A DNA stretch of 63,992 nucleotides, counting the filler, from Ministeria vibrans ATCC 50519 (taxonomy: Eukaryota > Protista > Filasterea), in the NCBI GenBank assembly GCA_943704425.1. It is 8 parts of 7 records of this genome, joined end to end, with 100 filler letters (N's around TTAATTAATTAA, not from the genome) between each part and the next. Parts side by side here need not be neighbours in the genome. Positions count along the whole stretch, not along the records: positions 1 to 17,784 come from CALSCP010001435.1; 7 more parts are not named here. The stretch is one strand, 5' to 3'. This document shows, in pieces, positions 1 to 17,784 of this stretch; position 1 is the stretch's first letter; each line of letters opens with the position of its first letter. Both the position numbers and the translations under genes were made by a program. A model generated the notes under the pieces. It ran no database searches and was not told where the DNA came from. It saw only the letters and a list, made by a program, of their open reading frames with translations.

Positions 1-62
1 GCGAGAGGACTGGAGTGGGCGGGGTGCGTACAGGGATCGTTCTCTTGCTTTTCCTCTCTCAG

Positions 63-3000
63 GCCAACGAGGCGACGCAGGAAGGACCGTCGACGGGCTC
101 GTATCAGACGAACATGCATCTGTACGAGGTGAGCGAGCTTGGCGCGGCTCTGGACACGAGCCTGGAGAACGGCTTGACGTCGGACGAGGCGGGCAGTCGG
201 CTGATGCGCGACGGACCCAACGTGCTGTCGCCGCCCAAGCAGAAGCCCGAGTGGCTCAAGTTTTTGCTGCAGTTTACCAACGGCTTTATGATCTTGCTCA
301 TGGGCGCGTCCATCCTGTCGTTTGTTGCGTACGCACTCGAGCCGGTGCAGCAGGATAATCTCTATCTGGGAGTGGTGCTCTTTGTCGTGGTCGTCATGAC
401 GTGCACCGCTGGCTACTACCAGGAGGGCAAGACGGGCAAGGTCATGGAACTCTTCAAGAGTATGCTTCCCGAGGCGTGTACCGTCACCCGCGATGGTCGT
501 GTGCAGACCATTTTGGCGTCGCAGCTCGTCGTTGGCGACATTGTCAAGATTCGTGGCGGCGAGAAGTGTCCCGCCGATTTGCGCATCATCTCCAACATGG
601 GCCTCAAGACCGACACATCGTCGATCACCGGCGAGTCCGATCCCATTGTCGCCGTGACCACCCCGACTCCCAACTCGCCCCCGCTCGAGTCGGTCTGTCT
701 CGTCTGGAACAGCAGTCTCGTTCTCGACGGCTCTGCCGAGGGTGTCGTCATCAAGACAGGTGACAACACTCTCATTGGTAGCATTGCATCGCTTGCAAGT
801 GGTGGCAAGGAGCAGCCTACCCTGCTTAACATTGAGGTGAACCGCTTCGTCAAGTTTATCACTGTCCTCTCCATCTGCATGGCCTCCGTCTTCTTCATCA
901 TTGGCGTCGCACGTGGCCCGCCCAAGGGCCAGTCTGAAGGCGAGAATGTTCTTAACGTATTTGTCAACGGTTTCATCATTATCATGGTCGCAAACGTCCC
1001 ACAAGTACAAACAAAAAACCGAAAAGAAGAAGAAAAAAAAACTTACCAATAACAAAAACGAGAATGAACATAAATGAACATTGCATTTTTTCTGTAGGGT
1101 CTTCCGAGTACAGTGACGAGTGTGTTGACGGTCACAGCGAAGAAAATGGCGCTGCGCAGTGTGTTCGTCAAGCGTCTCGAGTCGGTTGAGACACTGGGCA
1201 GTGTGGGTGTGATCTGTTCAGACAAGACTGGCACACTGACACAGAATGTCATGACGGTCGAGCGCGGCTGGACTCCCTCCAATCTATACTCGACATCTAC
1301 GGACTTTATTGGTGCGGCGGGCGGCAAGGCGTCCCACAAGCAGGGAGGTGACCCGATCAAGTGTCTTCCGGCTGCGCCAATGGGCGATCTCCTGTTTGTT
1401 GCGGCCCTCAACAGCCGCATTGCCGTCCAGTATGCCGATCCTACTCTTACCGCGGGCTCTGCTCCCGACGATGCCGAACTTATTCTTCAAGGTGATGCTA
1501 CCGAAAAGGTAAGTTTTTTTTCTTCAAAGTCGTCTTGTTCCTTGTTACTTTTTATTTTTCTTTTATCTCTTCTTCTTCCCCCTATAATTCTCACTCTCTT
1601 CATTATTTGTAGGCCATTTTCCGATTTAGTTCGCTCATGGTGAACATGCAGACGCTGCGTGCCGGCTACCAAAAGGTGTTTGAGGTGCCGTTCAACAGCA
1701 AGAACAAGTTTCAGGTGACAATCCACGCGCCCTTTTCGGGCTCGCAGCGTGTTCTCACGTTCAAGGGAGCACCCGAGATTGTGTTTGGACGCTGCTCTAC
1801 GTACATTGACAACGAGGGCAACGAGCAGAAGATTGACGATGATTTCTCGGCCGAGATGATGCGCGCGCAGGATCGTTTTGGCAACGACGGCGAACGTGTG
1901 CTCGGCTTTGCCATGCTGCCGTTGCCCACGGACGAGTACCCACCCGAGTACGACAGCAAGTATGAGGTGTCTAACGACGGCTGGACCTTCCCCGACCGTG
2001 GCTTCCGCTTCGTCGGTCTACTTGCCCTTTGTGATCCGCCCCGTGCATCGGTGCCCATGGCCGTGCAAAATTGCCACACGGCCGGCATCAAGGTCATCAT
2101 GATTACCGGTGACCATCCGTCGACGGCGTTGGCCATTGCCAAGAAGGTCGGCATTGTGCGTCCCGAGCACAACACCATCCAGGATGTGATGACCATGACC
2201 CAGACAGCCGTTCGTGCACTCACCGGCGGTGGTGTAGCGCCCAACGACGACGACGATGACGATGATGACGACGACTACGACGGTGCCGCAGGTACTGCTG
2301 CGCCTATTGCGTCGACCCAGTCGTCCATCAACCAGCGCACAGCAAGCATGATTAGCGAGGAAGACTTTGTGCGTCGACCTAAGGTGCGCTTCAACCGCTC
2401 GTCGTGGAACGAAATGGGTTCGGTGGCGCGCTTCCGTGCGCTCAGTGACCTCGATCCACCACAGAAGCTGACGAAGAAGCAGCGCAAGGCACTCATGTCG
2501 ACGGCGCCCGGTGCCATGCAGCCGTCACTCATGCAGGGAGTGCAGCTGGCGATTGATGGCGAAGTCATTGGTAAAGAGGGTCTGGCCATTCCGTCAGCGG
2601 TTGACCGTGGCGAGACGGATCTCGGTGTGATCCAGGTGCTCGATGGATTCGCCGCGGGCAACACGGTTGTCACGCATCCCATTTCGCAAAATGCCTCGGA
2701 GAAGCGTGTGACCCTGGCGCCTCAGCCGACGGTGCTCCCACGTGCGGGTGTCTTTGATCCGCGTGTGACGGCGGCCGTTATTCACGGACAAGACCTCGAG
2801 AAAATGCGCGATGACGAGGTCGACATGGTGCTGGAGAAGCAGGCGATTGTTTTTGCGCGCACGACGCCGCAGCAGAAGCTGCGCATTGTCACGCGCATCC
2901 AGCACCACAAGGCAATCTGTGCCATGACGGGTGACGGTGTCAATGACTCGCCGGCGCTCAAGAAGGCTGATGTCGGTGTGGCCATGGGCATCGCGGGATC

Positions 3001-3947
3001 GGCCGTGACCAAGGAGGCTGCAGACATCATTCTCATGGACGACGACTTTGCCTCGATTGTCTATGGTGTGCAAGAGGGCCGTCGTGTCTTTGACAACCTC
3101 AAGAAGACCATTGCCTACACTCTTTCGCATCTTCTCTCCGAAATGGTTCCCGTCATGCTTGCCCTTTCCGTCTCAATGCCTCAAGTACGTAAAACACGAG
3201 GAAACGTAGCTTTCATTGTGTGTCTTCATTGATATTTTCATTATTATTTTTATTTAGGGCTTTTCAAGTCTGTGTATTCTTATGGTGGATCTGGGCACTG
3301 AGCTTGCGCCTGCGATTGCTCTGTCGTTTGAGGACGCCGAGCCCAACATTATGCAGCGTCCTCCGCGCAACCCACAAAAGGACCGACTGGTGTCGCTTCC
3401 GCTACTGACGTACGCCTACCTGCAAGCGGGTGTGGTCCATGCGATTGTCGGAGTGCTGGTGTACGTTTGGGTGTTCATGCACAACCATGTGCCCATGTCG
3501 GCCCTGCCCTTTTCCACGTCCAACGGCTACTTTATTCCCGGTGGCACTGCCAACCTGACTGTCGACTACTACGGCACCGAGTACACCTTCTCGCCCGAGG
3601 AGCAGCAAAACATTCTGCTGACGGCCCAGTCAGGCTGGTTCATGTCTCTTGTGTTTGGACAGTTCTTCCATGTGTTTATGTGTCGCACGCGCACCTCCTC
3701 CATCTTCAAGCAGGGCATCTTCACCAACAACTACGTCAATGTCGGTGTCATTATCGAAATGGCTCTCTGCGCCTTCATCATTTACTTCCCGTACACCCAC
3801 ACCTTCTTCACCGACGGCTTCCTCCCAGGCATGTACTGGGCGGCACCCCTCATCACCTTTGTTGTGCTTTGGAGCTACAACGAGTGGAGGAAGCGCATGA
3901 TTCGTCGCTATCCTCTCAAGCCATGGGTCAAGCAGTTGACTTGGTGA
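63..3947 (+). CDS. P-type ATPase, subfamily IIC-like (Na+/K+, H+/K+ alpha-subunit family), 5' partial; exons 63-1004, 1098-1508, 1613-3184, 3258-3947
   Basis: After splicing at GT-AG introns: TGES, CSDKTGTLT (phosphorylation site), PFNSKNKFQ, KGAPE, MITGDHP, FARTTPQQK, TGDGVNDSPALKKAD, EGRRVFDNLKK. Ends ...KQLTW*. Confidence 0.93.
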
Positions 3948-4174
3948 TACAAAAGCAGATAGCAAGAGAGAGAGAGGAGAGAGAGGAGAAAGAAACAAAG
4001 TGATAGAGAGAGTCTGTGTGTGTATGAGAGAAAGAGAGTCACAGTGGGAGAAAGAGAAGAGAGAGAGAGGGGGGGGGTATAGAAAGATGTCTGTGTGTGA
4101 TTTTCGATATAAACAAACAAAAATGAATAGAATTACACCGTTTCTTTTTATTGATACATGGGGTGGGCAGGTGG

Positions 4175-5096
4175 TCAAGGAATGCGTTCATAGGGCTCCC
4201 ATTTGCGCATGCACGCCTCAAGAATGTGGTCCACGTGCTACAGAGACATAAGGGTGTTGAGTGATACCACAAGGACGACGGCGACGATGTGTACCTCTCT
4301 TGCTTTGTCGTGACAGTCTGGATTCATTTTCAGTGACTCGATGGCCCTTCGTCGCACACAGCGTTTGTGGTTGCCCAAGTACTTGAATTCTGGATTGGCC
4401 AACTCTTGTTTGATGTAGCAGTCACCACTGAGATTGGCAGCACGCACCTGTTGCACAAAAATAACGATCGTTTTCGTTAGTGTGCTTCTCTCTCCGACTT
4501 GGTGCCTCTATCACATTGATTCTATCATTCCTCCCTCCTCTCTGCTTCGCCCCGCCGACTACCTCTGAGCATGCATGATGCCTGCAGTTGTCCCAGGCAA
4601 TGTCAAACTTGGCGTAATCATAGGCGTGGATGAGTTCATGTGCGAGAGTGGCGTCCATGTACGCCTGCCGTCGAATGTTGTTCTGACACAGCACAATCCC
4701 CTCTTCCGGGACGAACCCGCCCATGGCCGGCTCGCTGCAGGGCCGACACACATAGATGTCCTCTGTGATAGGCACCCCCAGCTTCTCCATGGCCGTCAGC
4801 ATGTGCGCGACAAGCGGAGCTGCAATTTTTAATGTGTGTGTGTGTGTGTGTGAGAGGGAGAGAGAGTGAGACAGAGGGGAAACGAAGCGGTGCACAGCTT
4901 GAGCAACGTCGATCACACACGGCAAAGACAGGGGTGAGGATTCCGCGCAGAGGGGGCAGCAGGAAGGGCGGCAATCAATCAATCAATCAATCACACCTCT
5001 GGTTTTGGATCGCTCGAGAAAGGCCAAACATGATTCGTGCTGCTGTCGCTGCTTCGACTCTTCATCGTCCGGTTGGGATCCGCGAAAGAAGTCCAT
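4175..5096 (-). CDS. ATP23: Mitochondrial inner-membrane metalloprotease ATP23 (peptidase M76), 4 exons
   Basis: GGF..EEGIVLCQN, TLAHELIHAYD (HEXXH), WDNCRHHACSE|VRAANLSGDC, KRCVRRRAIES. Splices in frame from ATG 5096 to TGA 4175. Confidence 0.92.
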
Positions 5097-5241
5097 GGTA
5101 AAGAGACCAGAATATCAATTAGTTTGAAGTTTTTGAAGTTCGAACAATGAATAAAAAATAATTAATTTATTGGGCTCCTCTCATTAATTATCATTATTAT
5201 TATTTTTTATGAATATTATTTTAATTTTTCATTTAATTTGT

Positions 5242-6464
5242 TTACACAGGCGAGTGCATTCCAAGCTTCGTGTTGAACACGTTGAAAGCGCGCTTCTGGA
5301 AGCGAATGTAGCGACGACCGTCGAGTCCCTTTGCGTGTTCATTGAGTGCAATCAGAGGCACAAGAAGAAGAATGGTCACCACATAAGTGTACCTACCCAA
5401 AAACATTGTGAGTGCAACAGCACAAGATACCCATAATTATCAATATTGATATCATACCATTGAATATCGCTCAGCGCCACATTGAGTGACGGAGCATAGG
5501 TTACAGTGTTCATATAGATAGCAAAGAATACAATTTGGAGCACAATACTGCAAAAGGAAACAAATCAATTGAGGTGTGCTGTCAAACTTGTTGCATCAAT
5601 CGTACGTAAGAAGAGCTGCCAGACACCACTTGGGACTGCGAGAGGGTGGGTGAAGCCAAAAGGGAGTGTTTCGGCGGAGAAAAGACATGGACAGGACAAT
5701 GAGGTAGAGGAGAAAAGCAAAGGAGGAGAATGACTGGGCAAAGGCGAGTTGTGCATCGGCTGTGACTCCATTGAATGTGTATGGGTGAGTGGTCGCGAGA
5801 GCGCGATCGCCTTGTAGTGCTGCACACACACTAGTGCTGACATTCTTGTTGGCGTGACAGAGGTCATTGAGGACGAGCGCAAAGACAAGACAGGTGGAGA
5901 GGGCGATGGGGAGGATGCGATAGGCAAAGAGAAATACGAAGCGTTTGCGATCGGGAAGATGGTTCTTGTTCTTGACGGTGAGAGCGCGTTCGACGGCACG
6001 TGTCTCGTCGTCGTTGTGGGCGTGTTGCAGGAGAATGGGCCAGGAGAGCAGAGGAATAGGAATGAGAAGGGTGAAAAGCAGCTGTGTAACATTGAAGAGG
6101 GGTGGAAGCAAGAGAAATTGTGCAAAGAGCATAGAGAGTGAGAGTGCAATTGTCGCGCCCAATGCAAAGGTAACCGTGCGACGAGCACATGCAAGCAGAC
6201 GCCGCGACGAATACAGACTCACAATAAACAGTTGGAGTGGCGTGCTCCGCGAACCAGTCAAAGAGCCTAAATGTGAAGCAAGTTTAATGAGAAAGGCAAT
6301 GCTGTGTCAATGCTGTGTCAGCGCTCTTACATGGGACTGTGTTGATTGCCGACGAGAGGTCGTACAGGGGAGAGGCAATGTCGTCCAAGCGGGCCTCTTC
6401 TTTTTCACGGAAATGATCCATTGGACAGCCTAACGGTGACGGAAAGTCAAGTCAAAACAAACAA

Positions 6465-6555
<91 letters not shown>

Positions 6556-9500
6556 GTGTGTCCGTATGCGTTTCCGTACGTTCAGCGCGAAGAGGCTCAA
6601 GAGCAAAGGCACAGTCGGCAGCGCACCACGCAGCCACATTGTGGCAATTGTACGCACATCCCAGACAGCAAATCACCTCCGCGTACTCTTGCATGATCTT
6701 CATCATCTCCTAAAAGACACCAAAAATTAATGGTGCGTTCTCTCTCATTCCCAATGTTGCTTTTCTCTGTCACTCTCTCTGATCGTTTTGTTTTATCGAC
6801 AACTTACTGCGGACGAGGCATTGCTGCACTCAGTGAAGAGTGGCACTAACAGCGGGACATCATCAACACTCTCCAAATGCGGTCGAATGCTCCGCACACC
6901 TAACATAACAAGAAAGACAATGGGGTCAATGCAAATCTCACTCACTTTCACGTATACCCTTTGGCAGTCGTGACTTGTTTGCTGCGTAGGTGGGCACAAA
7001 ATCGAGTTTCTTCGAAGGTTTTACGCGCATAGTCGTCTCGTTCTCTTCGCCAAGTGAAATGTGACAGTTCCAGCCAGTTTCAATACCCATCTTCATGGCA
7101 AACTCTTTGCTGTGCATCTCATCCTAAGAAAATAACAACGACATCAATGTGTGCGTTAGTAAAGAGAATGAACAGAAGTAAATGTGAAAGTGTGTGTGTG
7201 TTAACCTCGTCACTGAAATACACAAAGCGAATTCCGGCCTTGTCCAGCGCCTCAACAGTACGAATCACCTGAAAAAAATAATAATGAGTAATGTCCGTCT
7301 CTTTCTCTGTTTTTTTTTATATATACGTCTTGTTTTGGCAGAACGTGCGTTGCAATCATTCCAACAAAGATTTGGCGTTGCATCAGCTGAAAGAGAGCAT
7401 TCGGCTCACCATCTTCGCGTGCGACACTGCACGGCAGATCTTCATCGTCACTGTCAGTCTAAAGAGAGTGAATACGTGAGTGAAAGAGAGGAGGGAGAAA
7501 GAGAGACAATTCTATAGGGAGAAACATTGAGAAAAAAAATAGAGTATGATAGAGAAAAAACAAAGCGATAGGGTGTGTGTGTGTGCGTGAGTGTGTGTGT
7601 GTGTGAGGTACACACATAGCCACACAACAAATGAGACTGTTCAATCGTTTGCGTTTTGCTACGTACTCCCGTCATGAAAGGAAGTCGCGCGAGCATATCC
7701 ACCTCTGTGCCTTGAATGTCAATGAACGAGCACGATGGACCACCCACAGACTGTTCAAGAGGCCGAAAGCTAAAAGCCGTCACACGTTTGGAACGAGTGT
7801 GCGCTTGGTAGAAGTGCTGAGCGGCTAATAGAAGAAGACACTGGTTTAGTGAACCTACAACACGACGTATTGCATTGCATACCTCTCAGCTGCACTGCGT
7901 CCATTGGTAGCAGCTGACGACCATCCCAGAAGTCAGTGCACATGGGAAAGAGCAGTGGAGGTGCACCCGAGGTGAAGAGAAACAGGTTCTTGGTGCCGTC
8001 GTCGGCCGAGGTTGCCCCCTGAGCACGCACACGGTCCGCGTCAGCAATGGAGACCACCATGGACGTGACACTGGGAACAACCAGACTGCCTTCCATGGCT
8101 CGTCGTCGGTGCGGGTGGCGCATGCCTTCCGCACCACTGCCACCTGCACCACCTCCAGTGCTGTTCCCCACAAGATTGGCACTCCCCATCGATGCACTAC
8201 TGCAGCTTGCATTGTCACCACCAGCAGCACCCCCACCAGGAAACCCCCCGCCACCACCCGTGAGAAAAGGCACGACGCCCGACGCGGCCATCATAGTCGA
8301 CTGTACATCGCCGCGTCGTCGCATCATCGTGTGCATGTAGCAGTGTCGCGGTGCAAAGCAATATATAGTCTTGAGTCGCTCGTACACCGCCCCGTTGATT
8401 TCCAGCGCATTCCCAACCATTTGCAAGGCAGTCAGAGGCGACGCAGCTTCCTCGCTTACCTCTCCCTCTTCGTCGACGCCACGCACATCTGCCACATTCA
8501 GTCCCACTGCATTGCCCAACGCACACATGCATCGATCAACCTTGTGGTGGTCGCCCATGGGAGTGAGACCTCGCTCGCGAAACGTCTGGTAGTTGGCATG
8601 TCGCTGAACTGATGACAAAACCGCGGGCATATCATGACCTGTACCAGAAAGAAAATAGAGAGGAAAAAAAAGAACGATGGAGAGCAAGAAGAGGGAAAAG
8701 AAATGACGGGAGACGGGAGAAAGAACAAAGTAATAGAGAGTACAAAAACAAAAGTGCGGGGGTGTGAGAGAAAGCCGGAAAAAAAATACTATTCTGTCAA
8801 AACAGTTAGAATTTGGAACATACCGGCCATAAGAAGTGAGTTGAGTGCGAGAGGTTTCATCTGCTCAATGTACTGCTGCCAGTGACTTTCCTCAAAGCGC
8901 AGTCCTTTCGACAAGTCAAGCACGACAAAGCGACGACGCGCATGTCCATCCGTCGCCGCGTGCGACTCGCCAGCACCCGCTTTGGTCATGGATGCCCCCT
9001 CAGTCGCGGTTGTGGTGGTTGGCATCTCGGACTCTCTCGCCGTATCTGATACAGTGTTGATGTTGTTCTTGCTGTTGTCGACCTCTTCGGAGATGGTCAC
9101 ACGAGCCTCTCGGCGCGTGGTATTCGAGCGCCTCTTGGAACCTTTGCTCAATGACGACGGCATGCCAGACTTAATGGACGGTGACGAGTCAGTTGCCTGG
9201 ACGGTTTCGGGTTCCTCTTCCACAGCCGGAAGATTCGCGGTCTCGGGTGCTTGGACAACAGGCTCGTCGTCCACGGCAGTCGACTCTCCCGTGACCCTAC
9301 TGTCATGTGTCACAGGCTCTGCAGACTCGACCGACTCAGACTGAACCGACTCGGGCACAGACTGCACAGTCTCAACAGTACTCTCACGTTCCGGCTCAAA
9401 CACAGGTTTCTCATCGACAGACGGAGATGCAGTCGTCTCTGCCGTCTCTTCCTCATCGACAGACGGAAATGCACGCGTCTCTTCCACCTCTTCCTCATCG

Positions 9501-9918
9501 ACAGACGGAGATGCAGTCGTCTCTTCCGTCTCTTCCTTCCCCAACACCTTCATCTCCAGACCACCGTCGAGAGAAGGACCATCATCATCCTTGACAACAG
9601 GCGGGTCTTCTGTTTCTTCCTCTGCCTGGCTCTCGTCCTCCTCCAGGTCCAATTCGTCGTCAGTGGTCGACGCAGACGACGACGAAGACGACGACGGCGC
9701 CATCTCGTGCGTCTCCTCTTGCTCATGCGCAAACCACACTTTGGCCACGGACTCCTCCGCCTCAGACAACACTCCTCGCTTGTCTACACAGCACAGTCGC
9801 GTTGCATTGCCCAGTGAGCGCACAAGCGGCGCCGAGCGCGGCAGTGTGCGGGTCTCACGCCCTCGCAGTATGTCCCAAAACAACCTCAGACGTTCCAAAC
9901 TCGTTTGAAAGGGCAAAA

Positions 9919-9949
<31 letters not shown>

Positions 9950-11574
9950 AGTTAAACAGAGTCACAAGGCATAAACAGTTTTTATTTCATGTACCTGCTC
10001 CGGTGGGATCCGAGTCAATGAGAATCGCAGTGGTGTAGTCATTTTGTGCGGTACGATGTGCCTTGGTAGTACCACCAGTGTGCTGCTCGACGGACCACTG
10101 CTCGACGGCACGGGAGGTGTCGAGAAGCACGGCGGAGCAGTAGACGTGGATGGCGAGCCAAAGGGTTGGGAAGAGGAGGGGAACGAGCGGAAGGATAACG
10201 GTCGCCGGAAGAGAGAGGAACATGGCGGGCCAAGGACCCGTCTCGCGCGTGAGAATCGTGTAGCGGATAACATTGGTGAGCAGCGCAATGAGAAAGGTGC
10301 CGGGCACAACGTACTTCATCAGAAGCTCACCGGTGATGCTCATTTCGCGCTCGATGACTGTGGGCGGACGAGTGTTGGTGGTCGACTTCAAAACGGTGTC
10401 AAGCATGGCGGTTAGGGGATATTCGAGTGCTTCAAAGAGCAGCGGGTCGACAAGATCGCAAGTGGCAACGGATGGGCCGTTGTTGGTAGAGGGAGTTGCT
10501 GTTGCTGCTGCCGTGGCTGCTGCTGCGGCTGCGGCCGTGGTCTGCGTGGTTGTGGTCGCACCGGAGAGGGATGAAATAGATGATGGAGTGTGCTTGAGAA
10601 CGGGAGAAGCGAGTGGCTGCGACGGTGCTTGGGAGTGTGATGACGCATTCGTCTGCTGCTGCTGAAGTTGTTGCGACGACTGTGGCGAGATCAGTGAGGG
10701 TGTCTGACTCGCTTGGAAAGCCTGCATTGCTGAAAGAGAAGGCACAATGCGACCGTCGGCAACTTCAAAGCCGATGAGAGCGGCCAAGGGCGACTGGAGC
10801 GTCGACGAGCGAATCGACATGATGGAGGAGGGAACTTGAAGCGATTGAGTGTCGGCGCCACAGAAGCGCACACGGCAAGGCGCCAGCTCGCCTGGCCACA
10901 GAAGCAACAAGTCGCCTTCAACAATAAGGTTGTCTGGCACATAGCAGCGCTCTCTGATGACGAGGGACACAACAAAATAATAATAATATTAATGAAGACG
11001 GAGAGGAATGTAATATTTTCCTTTTTTTATCCTTTACCCGTCGCGTAGACAGAGGCGCACGGTGCTGGAGGGAGCAGGAGCAGGGATCTCGGGAAGAGAG
11101 CGCACCGAGTCGTGGTTTGCAAGGTCGCGGAAGGGCTCGACGACGGTGAGAAGGCGAGAGGAGAGCTCGGCGAGTCGCAGTGACTCTTCGCGCCGCAACA
11201 GAACCAAATTGAGAATGGAGATGAGGAGGACAACGAGGCCTTCGACAAGTAAGGCGACGGGTCGAGCCACCAGGCTCGCTTCGGTTCCATTGGAAGATCC
11301 CTAGAGTGAGTGAGAGCGAAGGAGAGAAGAGATCAATCAGTCAATGAGAAATAGCAAAAAAGGAAACGAGTACCTCAGCAATGGCAAAGACAACAATGAA
11401 GACGACGGCGACAAGCATGGAGACCGCAATGGGATGCCATTTGGAGGGCAAGAAGCGCATTTGAGAGCGAATTTTGGTCTCTTGTTTTGCAACTGCCTGA
11501 TCAATTTGATCGAGGACGGCAGCGATTGCCTGCCTCGTGGATTTGCCACGGACAGGCAGGATTTCCATCTCCAT
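5242..11574 (-). CDS. TMEM94: TMEM94 / ERMA (P-type-ATPase-like ER membrane protein), multi-exon
   Basis: Matches TMEM94 motifs: GKSTRQA (N-terminus), SLGNATRLCCVDKRGVLSE, WQQYIEQMKPLALN, IRFVYFSDE..SKVFAMKMGIETGWNCHISL, IRPHLESVDDVPLLVPLFTEC, MMKIMQEYAEVICCLG, C-terminal FNTKLGMHSPV*. Confidence 0.9.
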
Positions 11575-11724
11575 TCTGAGGAGAGAGAGAGAGAAAAAAA
11601 ATTATTCAGAATACTCAATAATGAATAAAGAAACAAAGAAAGAAAGAATTCCAATCAATCCGAATTAATTTTTCAGAAAATACAGAACTTTTTCTCATAA
11701 TTCATTATACTGTCGCATAGTAAT

Positions 11725-13114
11725 ATGCACATTTTCACGCTAAACGACCTTCCTGTCGAACTAATTGTCTACATTCTGTCTCTGGTGGACGTCAGTGACG
11801 CCCCTCAGATTTTCTCGACCTGTCGCCGATGGCTCGCCTGTCGCGCCGACGTACTCCCTCGGCTGCTCTATGCCAGCTGTCGTGGACAATTTTATAAACA
11901 TGGCATCGCGTGGGACGTTGGAGAGTACGCAGAATTTTGTATTTTTGTTTGTTTTGTTGACTGAAGCATTTTTTTTTTGATGCTTCATCAAAATAAGCCA
12001 AAACGTAAAACACAAAACCAAAACACCTCAACGTAGCTGTCATTCACTGCAACGGGCTGTGGAGCGAGCACCCAATGTCGACGAGTTGGCCGCACGGATT
12101 TTCTCGTTGCACGCGAACACCGCGAGAGCACAGGCACGTGAGTACGTGCTGTGGGCGTGCGAGCGGGACCGCCCGTTGCTCGGGTGTGTGGCTCTCGCCG
12201 CCTGGAAGCGCAGCTTTCGCGACTCCCAGCGTAATCCAGCGAGTGCCGAGGCACACCACGAACTGGCACTGTTTGTGCGGCGTGCGGCTTTGTCTGGTGC
12301 CAACGACACACTTGCGCACCTGTTGGTGATGAACGATGCAGCATCGCTGCAGGCGATGAATGGCTCAAGGCTCAAGGCACTACTCACCCAGTGTGCCCGT
12401 TTACGACACGGCGACGTCATCTCTACGCTCTTGGCGCACCTCAAGACACCGTGTACCTGGCACGAGATCGACGATGCGCTCGCTGCGGCTCTCTTTGCCG
12501 GCGACCTTCAGCTCACACGATGCCTTCTCCAGGGACTTCACGAGCGCGCCCTGGACAGCGTCTCGGGCCTTGAAATTACCCATACTTTGTGTGTGGCGGT
12601 GCGTAGTGACGAAGCGTCCATCGAATGCTTGAAGGAGCTACTGTCGTTTCGTGGAGGTGTTCATAGGGTGTCTGCGCTGCGTGACTCGGTGATGGTGCAG
12701 AGAGCTGTGTGGACCGAAGTTGTCCTTGCAGCAGTGACGAGCAGCCAGTTTAAAGGTGCTGGCGAGTCAAAGCTGGACCTGATAAAGCATTGCATCAATA
12801 CACTCCCACCGCACTGTCTCACGGGCGAGATGACGCAGCGCTGGCTCATAGCTGCCTTGCCCACCCCCACCCTGTTTGCCTTCTTTCTTGCCTATGTCCC
12901 ACACAGACCCGCACTACCCTTTTCTCTGTACCTGAGTGCGTGTCGTGCGGGACTGGCCCCTCAACTGCGCATGATGTTGGAGCACGATCACTCGCGTGCG
13001 ACTCGTCTGCATGAGCTCCACTCGTACGGAGTGCGCGAGCGGTTCTCCGATGCCATTCGGGAGTGTCTCGTCCGCGACCGAACCAAGGGGAGTTGGCGTG
13101 GCAGAAGACGATAA
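11725..13114 (+). CDS. F-box protein with Leu/Ala-rich helical C-terminal region; exons 11725-11924, 12037-13114
   Basis: N-terminal LNDLPVELIVYILSLV...STCRRW is an F-box motif. The phase-2 intron joins it in frame to the 12059 ORF. Confidence 0.7.
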
Positions 13115-13240
13115 TGCGTTGTGAATTTTGTACTAGTAACTAGTGAATGTGATATTATTTGGAGCTTTACATGCGATGATTATTTTCAATTTTGACTCAT
13201 TTGAGAAGTGAGAACTGTAACTTTTATTTTTCATTCTACG

Positions 13241-14154
13241 ATGCTCCGTGCTGCATTCCGTCTTACGCATCGTAGTGTTCTCAGTCGTAGCGCGCTTTTG
13301 TCGCGCGGCTACACCGCTAGCTATGAGGAAGCGGCGCGTACCGCCGGCGAAATGGATTCTGTTGGTATAAACAAGGGGCAATTTTAAATCAACATTGTCT
13401 GGACTGCGTTTGCCCGCATTTGAGAACATGGCTGTGTGAAAATGACGTCTGAGCACAAAACATTCTGAGAGATATTGAACTGTTTTTCGTTTTTTGTCTG
13501 TTCCTTTTTTCAAAAACTCAAAAAAAAAAAAACACTCTCTTGCGCAGAAAAGGTCATTCACGAGCACGTTCCGGCCGAGAAGCGCGACGAGCTGTTGCGT
13601 GTGATGTACGGGTGGAACCAAGGGAAGCTTGTGGAATCGTTGGCGGTCCCGCAAGCGGCCAAGGCGATTGGCGACGCGAACGACTTTGACGTCGACCTGT
13701 ACCGCTTTGCGGCGGCCAAGGAGCCACGCACGCCGCGCACGGTGCGCTTTGGCGTGACGCAAACCTCCATTGTGCTGCCTACCACCGCGTCGGTCGACGA
13801 CCAGTACAATGCGCTGGCGGAGCGCCACGAACAGATGGTGGAGGCGGCAGCGGCCGCAGGCTGCAACGTCCTGTGCTTCCAGGAGGCCTGGTACATGTGT
13901 TTTGCCTTTTGCACGCGCGAAAAGATCCCCTGGAGTGCATTTGCACAGTGTGCTGAGACTGGCGCGTCGACCAAGCTGCTGCAGCGACTCGCAGCCAAAC
14001 ACAACATGGTCATTGTGAGTCCGATTCTGGAGCGTGATCGTGCTCATGGTGACACCATCTGGAACACAGCGGTTGTCATTGGCAACAACGGAAACGTATA
14101 AAGAGAGACCCACTTTAACACGCTCCAGAATGATTAATATATTTAATTATATAT

Positions 14155-14185
<31 letters not shown>

Positions 14186-15257
14186 TTGTGTAGGTGATTG
14201 GGAAGCACCGCAAAAACCATATTCCACGCGTGGGAGATTTCAACGAGTCGACCTACTACATGGAAGGGAACACTGGTACACTGCAGAACAAGAGTGCAAA
14301 ACTAAAGGGATTTAAAATTTTGCTCACTTTATCATTTTGTTTCTCTCTCCATCACTTTTCTCTCTATCACTTTGTGTCTCACTCTATCACTTTGTTTTTC
14401 TCTCTCTCTATCACTTTGTGCCTCTCTCTCAATCACTTTGTTTCTCTCTCTCTCTCAATCATTTTGTTTCTCTGTTTCTCTGTAGGATGGCCTGTGTTTG
14501 AGACTGCATTTGGGCGAATTGCCATCAACATCTGCTACGGGCGACACCACCCGCTCAATTGGATGGCCTTTGGGCTCAATGGCGCAGAAATTGTGTTCAA
14601 TCCTAGTGCGACGGTGGGTGCGCTCAGCGAGCCCATGTGGCCCGTCGAGGGTCGCTGTGCTGCCATTGCCAACTCGTATGCAATATCCTAACCCTGGTGA
14701 CAAAGTCGCAACCCTAACCCTAATCCATTCCTTGTTTTCCTCTGTAAACTGTCTTTCATTACATTAGGTACTTTGTTGCGGGTAACAACCGACTGGGCAC
14801 CGAGACATTTGCAAATGAGTTTACCAGCGGCAATGGCAAACCCGCTAAACACGATTTCGGTCATTTCTATGGAAGTTCGTACATTGCGGGCCCCGACGCC
14901 TCACGCACTCCCGTAAGCACTCCAAAGCACTCAAAGCCTCTCCTTCTCTCCTGACCTTTTTGTCACATGCAAACCCACACACACACACACTCTCTCTCGT
15001 TTACATACATATGTACTCACACACACTCTCTCTCACGCTTTCTCTCTGTCTCTGTCTTTGTCTCTCCCTCTCAGGGTCTGTCTCGCGTCCGTGACGGTGT
15101 GCTCATTACCGAAGCGGATCTTAACCTTGTCCAGCAAGTGCGCGACTCGTGGGGCTTCCAGATGACTGCTCGTTATGCTGATTACGCAAAGCTTCTCGAG
15201 AGATATGTTGCTCCTGATTTTCAGCCGCAAATTGTGACGGACTCTAAATCAAAGTGA
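13241..15257 (+). CDS. UPB1: Beta-ureidopropionase (beta-alanine synthase, nitrilase family), 6 exons
   Basis: Catalytic E-K-C motifs [29 protein letters not shown] and [13 protein letters not shown]; also [33 protein letters not shown]. Confidence 0.95.
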
Positions 15258-15561
15258 ACAAAAATAAATTAATCACTCAGCCCGAATAGGATTGTTTGTA
15301 TGCATTTTAAACCTAATATTTTATGGTCATCGTTTGAGCATTTTTGGCCAAGTTTCAAAAGTATTACGTGCTAAGCCATTGGTAAAGTCATCAGTTGGTG
15401 CCTATTGCGTCACTTGCCTGGCCATCAGCCAACCCGTCTTGCAAGTGGTTTTGAACTATTTGTTTCTTCCCTTTTCATTTGATGTTTGATAAACTGTAAA
15501 TGAATAAAAAAATATGCAGATTTTTTTTTCTTTCCATTCAGCAAAGTAAAGGTGCATCAAT

Positions 15562-17308
15562 ATGGCCAACCAAGGGATGTACGACGTGAGCGGAACGGGC
15601 GGAACGGGCAGGAAGCAAGAAACAAGCTGCTGGGAGTGGACGCTGTACATTCTCGTTGGTCTTCTCGCTCTCCTCACGATTGTCAACTTCGCTCTTGTCC
15701 TCTGGGTTATCTCCACACTCAACATGGTACGGATACTCTAGTCTGAGCTCTCCCTCCTCCCCGCACACCTTATTCGCGCTCCTCCTCTGAGCTGTCTTGG
15801 TATATAATATTTTGGCGTTTCATAAATTTTTTTTCGAATTCTCGTTTCTGTGCGACCCACTGAACTCGACATCGCCGCGTTCTCTCTGTTCCATTACCAT
15901 TGTATCTATCGCTGTGATTCCCTGTCGACAATCGCCTTATCTCTTCTGGTTTCACTTTGGAGCGTTTCTTTTTCTCTCTGACAGTGATGGACGTTTGTGT
16001 AGAACTCCAAAGGAATTCCCTCCATGGACATTGGCGACGACTCCGTCTCGATCTTCCAGAACCTCTTTGTTAACGGAATTGTCAGCGCCGAGCAGTACCA
16101 GTCGCAGGGCGCAGTAAGACGAAAATGCACTAACCCTAACCCTAACCCTAACCCTAAACAATATAATATGTAGGTGTCTCTTTCGTCTCAATCCGACATT
16201 GCTATCACGAGTACGGGCACGACGACCATTTCTGGGGCAGATGTTGATGTGAGTTTGTCGGGTGCTGCATCGACTTTCGACGTGATTGACTCAGCGGCCA
16301 GCCCGATTCTGCGTGCGAGCACGGGCGGAACCACCTTCCAGAAGGCTGTCCAGGCGAGTGCGGGTGCGACGCTTAGCGGCGCATCCACTGTCCTCGGTAC
16401 TTTGAATGTTCAGTCAGGCGCGTCGTTTACAGCCGACGCCGGATCTACGATCACGTTCAACTCCCTTCCCAATTTCAACAGGTCAGAATTTAAAAAATTT
16501 ATTATTATTATTATAGCAATTCGGTTGAAAAACTCCGTCATTATTAATTATAATATTATATTATTCTAATTATTTATATATAAGATGATATAACTCACCT
16601 ATATTTATATCATTAATTTTATTCCTTATCAATTTGTGGCGCATGCAGTGGAGTCAGTGTTGCCTCTGGCAAAGTGTCGTCGCCCGAAGTGCTACAGCTG
16701 CAGGGCGGCAGTTCGATTCAGGCAGGCACAGTCGATTTGTTGCGTCTCTCTGCGTCGGGAGTGGGTGCAAACATTACAATGAGTTCGGATCAGGTAGTGC
16801 ATTGTGTGGGTGTCTTGAACGTAGTGTGCTACTGAATGATCAAAATTATGGTGGCTAATTAGGATTGCAACTTTAATTGTTATAGGTTGTGTTGGAGCCC
16901 GGCAGTGCGTTCGAAGTTGCATCGCGAGCCTCGGCACAAACAGTCGTTCCCACATTTACTCTCTGTGTCTGCAAAACCACAAAGGTGAGAAAGAATATTG
17001 ATACGGACTTTTTCAACTATGTTCGCTGCACTGCTGTCCAGTGGCACTCATTGAGTGGTATTGAGTCGCTGAGCAAAATCTCACTCACACACTCATGGGC
17101 CAGACTCATCATTTCACCACTCTGCACTACACATTCTCACAGACCCCAACAGTTCCCCAAGGTCCACACATACTCACTCACTTTCTGCTCGTTTTACGTG
17201 ACACTGTAGAACCTGGCGAGTGGACAGTATGTGCTGTTTGCGCTTCCTCCGGGTCTCTCCTGCGCTCAGTCGGACCCAAACGATCTCATTGCGATCTGTC
17301 CAGTGTAA
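15562..17308 (+). CDS. Sarcoglycan beta/gamma/delta-like type II membrane protein, about 308 aa; exons 15562-15726, 16003-16113, 16174-16481, 16649-16793, 16886-16984, 17210-17308
   Basis: All five GT-AG introns keep frame. Short cytosolic N-terminus, TM helix WTLYILVGLLALLTIVNFALVLWVI, Ser/Thr/Gly-rich beta-strand ectodomain, C-terminal FTLCVC...VLF....SC........IC cysteine cluster. Confidence 0.72.
16130..16157 (+). repeat. Interstitial telomere-type repeat (CCCTAA)n inside an intron
   Basis: ctaaccctaaccctaaccctaaccctaa read directly. A shorter copy lies near 14711-14724. Confidence 0.85.
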
Positions 17309-17364
17309 TTGGTCTCTCTCTTTTTACACACTCCATTTGTTCTTTTCTTTACTAAGTCTGTTTT

Positions 17365-17507
17365 TCAAGTGAATTTTGCTTTGCTAAAGTCCATTTCGGG
17401 ATGAGCCGCCATAAACTTATTGAGCGTCTCTTGTTTCTTCTGTTCGTCTGAGGTTGGAAGGCCCATCTGCTTTTGGCGTTGGTCAAACATCATTTTCTCA
17501 ACAACAC
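17365..17507 (-). CDS. NUDC: NudC nuclear migration protein, last exon only
   Basis: [44 protein letters not shown] is the NudC C-terminal signature. Confidence 0.93.
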
Positions 17508-17736
17508 CTGGAAAGAGAGAATCGAGAGAGAATGAGTAATGGGTGAGGAGTGTCGAGTGCGTAGAGAAGTGTCCAATTGAGTTTGATATATACAATGAAG
17601 AAAATTGCAGTGAGGGAGAGAGAGGAAAATAGAGGGCGAGAACGAGGGGAGAAAGAAACAAAATAATAATAGCAAGGATTAAAGAGACCGTGATAGAAAA
17701 CAAAATGATGAGAAAGAGAGAGAAAGAGAGAGAGAG

Positions 17737-17782
<46 letters not shown>

Positions 17783-17784
17783 GG

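Follow-up and report, generated by a model that had tools for sequence, protein, structure and literature searches.

A sarcoglycan-like gene with a predicted three-chain ectodomain in the genome of Ministeria vibrans

Results and discussion

The window analyzed here is a stretch of 63,992 nucleotides (nt) from the genome of Ministeria vibrans ATCC 50519 (GCA_943704425.1), in which eight parts of seven records are joined end to end. The first part (CALSCP010001435.1, positions 1-17,784) harbors a sarcoglycan-like gene of six exons at 15562-17308 on the plus strand. The gene is transcribed and spliced, occurs as a single copy, and encodes a protein of 308 amino acids (aa), which in our judgement is quite likely a very divergent member of the beta/gamma/delta-sarcoglycan family that would form a homotrimeric tower. 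This sarcoglycan reading is probably right, although family membership lacks formal proof. The searches, profile comparisons, and structure predictions for the protein were carried out with single exons, one at a time.

Gene structure and expression

The features of the gene and of the encoded protein are as follows, in positions of the window:

15562-15726, plus strand: exon 1, 55 aa, with the putative cytosolic tail of about 27 aa and the membrane helix
15643..15717, plus strand: membrane helix, about residues 28-52; most hydrophobic 19-residue window at 32-50, Kyte-Doolittle mean 2.61
15685..15687, plus strand: codon of Asn42, which is polar and lies midway along the membrane helix; aligned by HMMER with delta-sarcoglycan N48 and gamma-sarcoglycan N50
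16003-16113, plus strand: exon 2, 37 aa, where the ectodomain begins next to the membrane; taken alone, without a Pfam family or PDB match; junctions present in spliced contigs
16174-16481, plus strand: exon 3, 102 aa plus 2 nt, beta-strand segment rich in Ser, Thr, Gly, and Ala; predicted core of a three-chain beta-helix stalk
16649-16793, plus strand: exon 4, 1 nt plus 48 aa, a further part of the beta-rich ectodomain, containing the sole N-glycosylation sequon; junctions present in spliced contigs
16770-16778, plus strand: sequon N236-I-T, read from the sequence, the only one in the protein
16886-16984, plus strand: exon 5, 33 aa, end of the stalk and first cysteine pair (C270-x-C272); junctions present in spliced contigs
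17210-17308, plus strand: exon 6, 32 aa plus stop, with C294 and C306; junction present in spliced contigs

Three-frame translation of the region gave a coding total of 927 nt and 308 codons over the six exons, ending in a TAA stop codon at 17306-17308, and an in-frame stop lies five codons 5' of the ATG. Introns 1 to 5 measure 276, 60, 167, 92, and 225 nt, and all five run from GT to AG. The G+C content is 0.54-0.57 in the exons versus 0.20-0.47 in the introns.

The DNA at 15300-17500 was compared with contigs of four public runs from two studies (X11, X16, X17, and X18; P5 and P7). These contigs were 100% identical to the exons and showed exact gaps at 15727-16002, 16114-16173, 16482-16648, 16794-16885, and 16985-17209; the 60-nt intron 2 was skipped in three contigs (16113 joined to 16174). 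Because the introns are absent from the contigs, the runs behave as RNA. Since the contigs skip exactly the five introns that had been predicted, the six-exon model represents a real spliced and expressed mRNA and not a chance open frame. An earlier note on this DNA, made from the sequence alone, had proposed six short exons splicing into about 308 aa and named RNA-seq junctions as a check; all five junctions were recovered in contigs of the four runs from both studies. The peptides quoted there are likewise present: the stretch of the membrane helix, the sequon NIT (residue 236), and, at the C-terminus, TFTLCVCKTTK / NLASGQYVLF...ICPV. The idea that there is no real gene here, and that open frames and splice sites coincide by chance, could appeal to the fact that no annotated protein of the gene was met in the protein collections. 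Against it stand the five canonical junctions in spliced contigs of two studies and the different G+C contents of exons and introns; its probability is negligible, and the transcript contigs already refute it.

Exon 1 and exon 3 each matched only themselves across the genome, and the Pfam Sarcoglycan_1 profile led to one locus; the gene is single-copy. Two further details of the locus were recorded. Run X16 carries C for A at 16688, which changes GAA to GAC and Glu208 to Asp in exon 4, a conservative strain or sample difference. Intron 2 contains within its 60 nt about four telomere-type repeats, (CCCTAA)n at 16130-16159 (TTAGGG on the opposite strand).

Topology and composition of the protein

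The N-terminal tail of about 27 residues is hydrophilic and is followed by one strongly hydrophobic helix. No N-terminal signal peptide was found in the 308-aa protein, and the sole sequon and four of the five cysteines are located C-terminal to the helix. Because a signal peptide is lacking and the sequon and cysteines lie beyond a single helix, the protein has a type II topology. This is the type II layout of Sarcoglycan_1, in which a short cytosolic N-terminus and one membrane helix precede a large ectodomain in a protein of about 290-320 aa, and the length of 308 aa compares with 289-291 aa for the sarcoglycan chains in the PDB.

Ser, Ala, Gly, Val, Leu, and Thr abound in the ectodomain, and its hydropathy alternates strongly between successive residues (lag-1 z of -3.6 for exon 3 and -2.6 for exon 4). 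Such alternation is the signature of short beta-strands. Additionally, a hydrophobic residue recurs at about every sixth position from residue 55 onward. The only ectodomain cysteines are C270, C272, C294, and C306, all within the last 39 residues, and the protein ends two residues past C306.

Similarity of exon 1 to sarcoglycans

Exon 1 matched the Pfam family Sarcoglycan_1 (PF04790; gathering cut-off, 32.5 bits) with an E-value of 8.5e-6 and 25.7 bits over profile positions 9-39 of 259, and the second-best Pfam family trailed by four orders of magnitude. When the 29.7 Mb assembly was searched in six frames with the PF04790 profile, this locus was the only match (22.4 bits, E 0.0012). When exon 1 was compared by phmmer with 177,635 PDB sequences, the top three matches were delta-sarcoglycan (9c3c_d), delta-sarcoglycan (8yt8_D), and gamma-sarcoglycan (9c3c_g), with E-values of 0.33 to 3.3, none of them significant individually. 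Residues 27-54 of the candidate aligned to residues 33-60 of delta-sarcoglycan and 35-60 of gamma-sarcoglycan, a near-identical position in the protein.

The sarcoglycan subunits each carry a conserved asparagine (beta N79, delta N48, and gamma N50) that makes contacts in a three-helix membrane bundle (PMC13294987). In the HMMER alignments, Asn42 of the candidate falls on N48 of delta-sarcoglycan and N50 of gamma-sarcoglycan, so the candidate has an intramembrane asparagine at the corresponding position. The residues of exon 1 that are conserved are the informative ones, namely a Tyr, the mid-helix Asn, a Trp, and a terminal Asn. Furthermore, the named clusters among the language-model feature neighbors of exon 1 all belonged to PF04790 (scores of 0.89, 0.81, and 0.76); the best neighbor shared 190 of 256 features, and the family was common to the ten best matches (10/10). 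The Pfam, PDB, and language-model results draw on the same 55 residues and are not independent, yet they agree on one family.

Architecture of the ectodomain

In animals, beta-, gamma-, and delta-sarcoglycan have ectodomains that co-fold into a staggered triangular beta-helix, which is capped by C-terminal loops with conserved disulfides (PMC13294987). Three copies of exon 3 of the candidate were predicted to associate with an ipSAE of 0.95 in all three runs, versus 0.00 for the best of three controls. The partner pLDDT (predicted local distance difference test) was 95 with about 610 contacts, and contact agreement between the runs was at least 98%. The ipSAE mark was calibrated with two copies rather than three: 21 of 30 proteins whose solved structure is a pair of one chain attained it, compared with 0 of 23 whose solved structure is a single chain. 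The predicted contacts include 2:53-3:59, 2:67-3:73, 2:73-3:79, 3:65-1:71, and 3:71-1:77 (chain:residue). Because the contacts rise together with an offset of 6, the chains in the model would be parallel, each shifted six residues relative to the next. Such a pattern is what a C3 triple beta-helix with six-residue faces would give, and parallel chains would bring the three N-termini together on a single side, which is compatible with three helices sharing a membrane. A three-chain beta-helix as in Sarcoglycan_1 is therefore predicted for the exon 3 trimer, which suggests a likeness of architecture to sarcoglycans and is no proof of binding. An AlphaFold2 model of the exon 3 monomer was disordered (pLDDT 48) and unusable.

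In beta-, gamma-, and delta-sarcoglycan, it is the last four cysteines that are conserved (PMC2175228), and cysteines at the extreme C-terminus are a feature of sarcoglycans (PMC2175228, PMC3279956). The candidate has four terminal cysteines in the order C-x-C ... C ... C, at C270, C272, C294, and C306 of 308 residues, with the pattern C-x-C-x21-C-x11-C.

Weighing the sarcoglycan reading

Several observations weigh against the assignment to the sarcoglycan family. The Pfam score of exon 1 falls short of the gathering cut-off and covers the membrane helix only, and matches confined to a helix are less trustworthy than their E-values imply. A comparable sub-threshold, helix-centered match to the dystroglycan profile occurs elsewhere in the same genome, and all scores come from single exons. 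Exons 2-6, each a short query taken alone, had no sarcoglycan match in Pfam or the PDB at the low sensitivity that such queries give. Exon 3 had no relatives among 1.84 billion representative proteins searched by phmmer, where it met only its own open reading frame (ORF) call, P0001. The nearest language-model clusters of exon 3 were unnamed phage and green-algal ones. As for the trimer, the prediction was made without an alignment, the calibration used two copies, and the score may reflect the model's memory of any solved triple beta-helix. Lastly, the spacers between the terminal cysteines (21 and 11 residues) are longer than those of animal sarcoglycans.

Other searches gave a similar picture. 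P0001 is on record in one contig only, a Logan contig of 1.5 kb, and scans of JGI metagenomes with exon 3 and exon 1 found no relatives. The language-model features of exon 3 included Bactofilin at 0.89, no more than a hint of a beta-helix. The match of the C-terminal cysteines to sarcoglycans was reproduced by no alignment tool, the exons concerned being short. The PDB matches of exons 2, 3, 4, 5, and 6 were noise, such as antibodies and YopM. On this evidence, measurable sequence similarity to sarcoglycans appears confined to the N-terminal 55 residues. The earlier note had called the middle of the ectodomain compositionally similar to sarcoglycans, which was generous, as the ectodomain is without measurable sequence similarity. 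Its suggestion of a Pfam check was answered in part, by the sub-threshold match of exon 1 and by no match for exons 2-6.

The main competing explanation is a type II surface protein specific to this lineage, whose trimeric beta-helix stalk would be of a kind also seen in phage fibers and some adhesins; it would be unrelated to sarcoglycans, and its helix would resemble theirs by convergence or chance. This explanation would account for a measurable similarity confined to 28 hydrophobic residues and below the Pfam cut-off, for an orphan ectodomain, and for the phage and algal unknowns nearest to exon 3 in feature space; the helix-only, sub-threshold DAG1 match shows that such matches arise in this genome. 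However, three methods chose sarcoglycans, and only sarcoglycans, for exon 1, the locus is the sole candidate in 29.7 Mb, and the residues that are conserved are the informative ones. Moreover, the sarcoglycan length and topology, the three-chain ectodomain, and the terminal four-cysteine cluster are independent of the helix. We therefore regard an unrelated stalk protein as a real but distinctly less probable explanation than a divergent sarcoglycan. The interpretation given in the earlier note is supported in part: its core, a sarcoglycan-like protein, was borne out by every exon-by-exon test made for it, with the reservation that the score is below the Pfam cut-off and concerns 55 residues.

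If the protein is a divergent sarcoglycan, its working may be pictured as follows. The N-terminal tail of about 27 aa would be cytosolic, and the membrane helix with its central Asn42 would pack with two further copies into a three-helix bundle. Outside the cell, the Ser/Thr/Gly/Ala-rich ectodomains of three parallel chains would wind into one triple beta-helix stalk, with a shift of about six residues per chain between one face and the next. Cysteines 270, 272, 294, and 306 lie in the last 39 residues, which would form a cap stabilized by putative disulfides. A homotrimer is proposed because the genome has one such gene, and it would likely represent the ancestral state of the animal beta-gamma-delta heterotrimer. 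The complex might serve as a rigid cell-surface tower that organizes other membrane proteins, and it may couple to a cortical skeleton of dystrobrevin-like protein and spectrin, with both partners and function being conjectural.

Host gene set and origin of the contig

The assembly consists of 2860 contigs that total 29.7 Mb. It contains three strong integrin beta genes (35-38% identical to animal ones), together with two T-box loci and many full-length matches to tyrosine kinases (200-297 bits). No Wnt was found in the genome, and homeodomain matches numbered only nine. Taken together, integrin beta, T-box, tyrosine kinase, and spectrin genes alongside few homeoboxes and no Wnt indicate a unicellular holozoan, for instance a filasterean or a comparable lineage, and not an animal or a distant protist. 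A photosynthetic alga as the host was ruled out, since no light-harvesting (LHC) genes were found in the genome.

The assembly also contains spectrin, as the earlier note had stated, whose more than 150 canonical repeats score up to 87 bits and lie in frames of 2500-3500 codons that lack introns (C572, C1674, C738, C942, and C596). In C572, some blocks of spectrin repeats score identically, which suggests a recent internal duplication or an assembly repeat.

The gene could be an ordinary animal sarcoglycan if the contig were animal contamination, and the animal-like integrin beta, T-box, tyrosine kinase, and spectrin genes, with animals as the best named integrin matches, might be taken in that sense. 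Nevertheless, an assembly of 29.7 Mb in which introns are short and frames run for thousands of codons without an intron does not fit an animal, nor do the missing Wnt and the few homeodomain matches. The integrin beta genes are just 35-38% identical to animal ones, the neighboring Na/K-ATPase-like gene of this contig shares about 50% identity with its best named matches, and the ectodomain of the candidate matches no animal sarcoglycan. In addition, DNA of this locus is also present in seawater and algal-culture metagenomes. Contamination is thus highly improbable. The host described in the earlier note as apparently non-animal is indeed not an animal; it is a close unicellular relative of animals, so the find is less surprising than the title of that note implied.

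Other parts of the dystrophin complex

The earlier note had also suggested a search for dystrophin and dystroglycan, which was partly successful: a dystrobrevin-like frame with EF-hands was found, and for dystroglycan only a sub-threshold helix match. The frame (C263, 648-3071 of L002) has dystrophin-type EF-hands, with EF-hand_3 at 26.9 and 22.2 bits (cut-off 21.7) and EF-hand_2 at 26.0 bits, just under the cut-off of 27. The EF-hands are followed by a half-ZZ-like CxxC-x19-CxxC and then by a Gln/Glu-rich, coiled-coil-like stretch. The frame had no Pfam ZZ match, and it had no homologues at E <= 0.001 in a large protein collection. In sequence, its layout resembles that of dystrobrevin.

The best match of the dystroglycan profile (PF05454/DAG1) was in C2595 (19-22 bits; cut-off 23.3) and was centered on a membrane helix. 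The matching exon encodes a Gly/Asn-rich stalk and the membrane helix, and upstream of it, with the same strand orientation, are cadherin domains scoring 70.7 bits (L003:3-1770). The gene could encode a cadherin-type receptor or a very remote dystroglycan-like protein. For alpha/epsilon-sarcoglycan (PF05510), no match at E <= 0.1 was found in the genome, which, the assembly being fragmented, does not prove that it is absent. A membrane-to-cortex linkage, as raised in the earlier note, is accordingly an idea and not a finding.

Implications

A survey of the complex placed sarcoglycan only in cnidarians and bilaterians (PMC4582122), with alpha-sarcoglycan, a different family, as the query. A passage of the Capsaspora genome paper refers to 'several components' of the complex in that filasterean (PMC3753549). 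Genes of the beta/gamma/delta type from unicellular holozoans may already be present in domain databases.

On balance, we lean slightly towards the view that the protein is a homotrimeric proto-sarcoglycan made from a single gene, and that its host, a unicellular animal relative, is without alpha-sarcoglycan and without clear dystroglycan. In that case the tower would be older than animals, muscle, and the laminin-dystroglycan axis, duplication of a homotrimer would have produced the beta-gamma-delta heterotrimer, and the original role would have been independent of dystroglycan. If the protein is a true homologue, the origin of the sarcoglycan tower moves to before the animals. Together with the cryo-electron microscopy structures of 2024, this would give a testable picture of a one-gene homotrimer that was later split into three subunits, as well as a single-gene system in which to ask what the tower does without muscle or dystroglycan. 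In addition, the mid-helix Asn and the cysteine cap are the kinds of site struck by mutations in limb-girdle dystrophy, such as C283Y in gamma-sarcoglycan (PMC2175228).

Neighboring features

One further transcribed feature overlaps the gene:

17036..17500, minus strand: transcribed stretch of the neighboring gene, overlapping intron 5 and exon 6; strand deduced from the ORF at 17365-17703

A contig of run X11 with a depth of 628 covers 17036-17500 and beyond, compared with a depth of 2-7 for the sarcoglycan-like gene. This contig probably belongs to the minus-strand neighbor (ORF 17365-17703). If so, the long 3' end of the neighbor overlaps the last exon of the sarcoglycan-like gene in antisense. 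A reading of this ORF as the C-terminus of NudC had no Pfam or PDB support and is not claimed.

Upstream, a P-type ATPase gene of at least three exons occupies 15-3947 on the plus strand, with the domains Cation_ATPase_N, E1-E2_ATPase, Cation_ATPase, Hydrolase, and Cation_ATPase_C. Among named proteins, it is closest to animal Na/K-ATPase alpha subunits and a Physarum transcript, at about 50% identity. A carbon-nitrogen hydrolase exon at 14194-14691 on the plus strand (E 2.4e-16) is consistent with the UPB1-like (beta-ureidopropionase-like) neighbor named in the earlier note. The long open frames at 7770-10970 (minus), 12059-13114 (plus), and 13133-14113 (minus), of 305-385 codons, matched nothing in Pfam at E <= 0.001. 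The piece closes with a long (GA)n run (17700-17784), which is probably the reason why the contig ends there.

Comparison with known systems

The candidate was compared with delta/gamma/zeta-sarcoglycan (PF04790; chains of PDB 8YT8 and 9C3C). In common with these proteins, it is a type II single-pass protein of about 300 aa, and its helix is located at the corresponding position and has both the pattern LY..V.LL..L..VN.A...W and the mid-helix Asn. The ectodomains are beta-rich, that of the candidate being predicted to form a three-chain beta-helix, and carry one or more N-glycosylation sequons. Like gamma- and delta-sarcoglycan, the candidate has exactly four ectodomain cysteines, which are located at the extreme C-terminus and start with C-x-C. 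In contrast to these relatives, the similarity of the candidate stops beyond the first 55 residues, its ectodomain is rich in Ser, Thr, Gly, and Ala with few charged residues, and its inter-cysteine spacers are longer. Its host has no alpha-sarcoglycan match and no clear dystroglycan, and, unlike the subunits of the beta-gamma-delta heterotrimer, the candidate is single-copy and presumably forms a homotrimer.

Beta-sarcoglycan belongs to the same family and shares the architecture, with a membrane Asn of its own (N79) and a terminal cysteine cluster; it differs from the candidate in a longer cytosolic tail, with the helix starting near residue 65. The short tail of the candidate and its PDB and language-model matches favor the delta/gamma/zeta type, as far as the sequence indicates, and the candidate may predate the split of beta from this type.

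Triple beta-helix segments are also known from the tail fibers and spikes of phages (e.g., T4 gp5 and gp12). These segments resemble the predicted stalk in their three parallel chains wound together with short repeated strands, and the clusters nearest to exon 3 include phage proteins. The phage proteins are soluble parts of virions with no membrane anchor, and no sequence homology between them and the candidate is shown. The candidate, in contrast, is encoded by a spliced eukaryotic gene and combines its predicted stalk with a sarcoglycan-type anchor and a putative cysteine cap.

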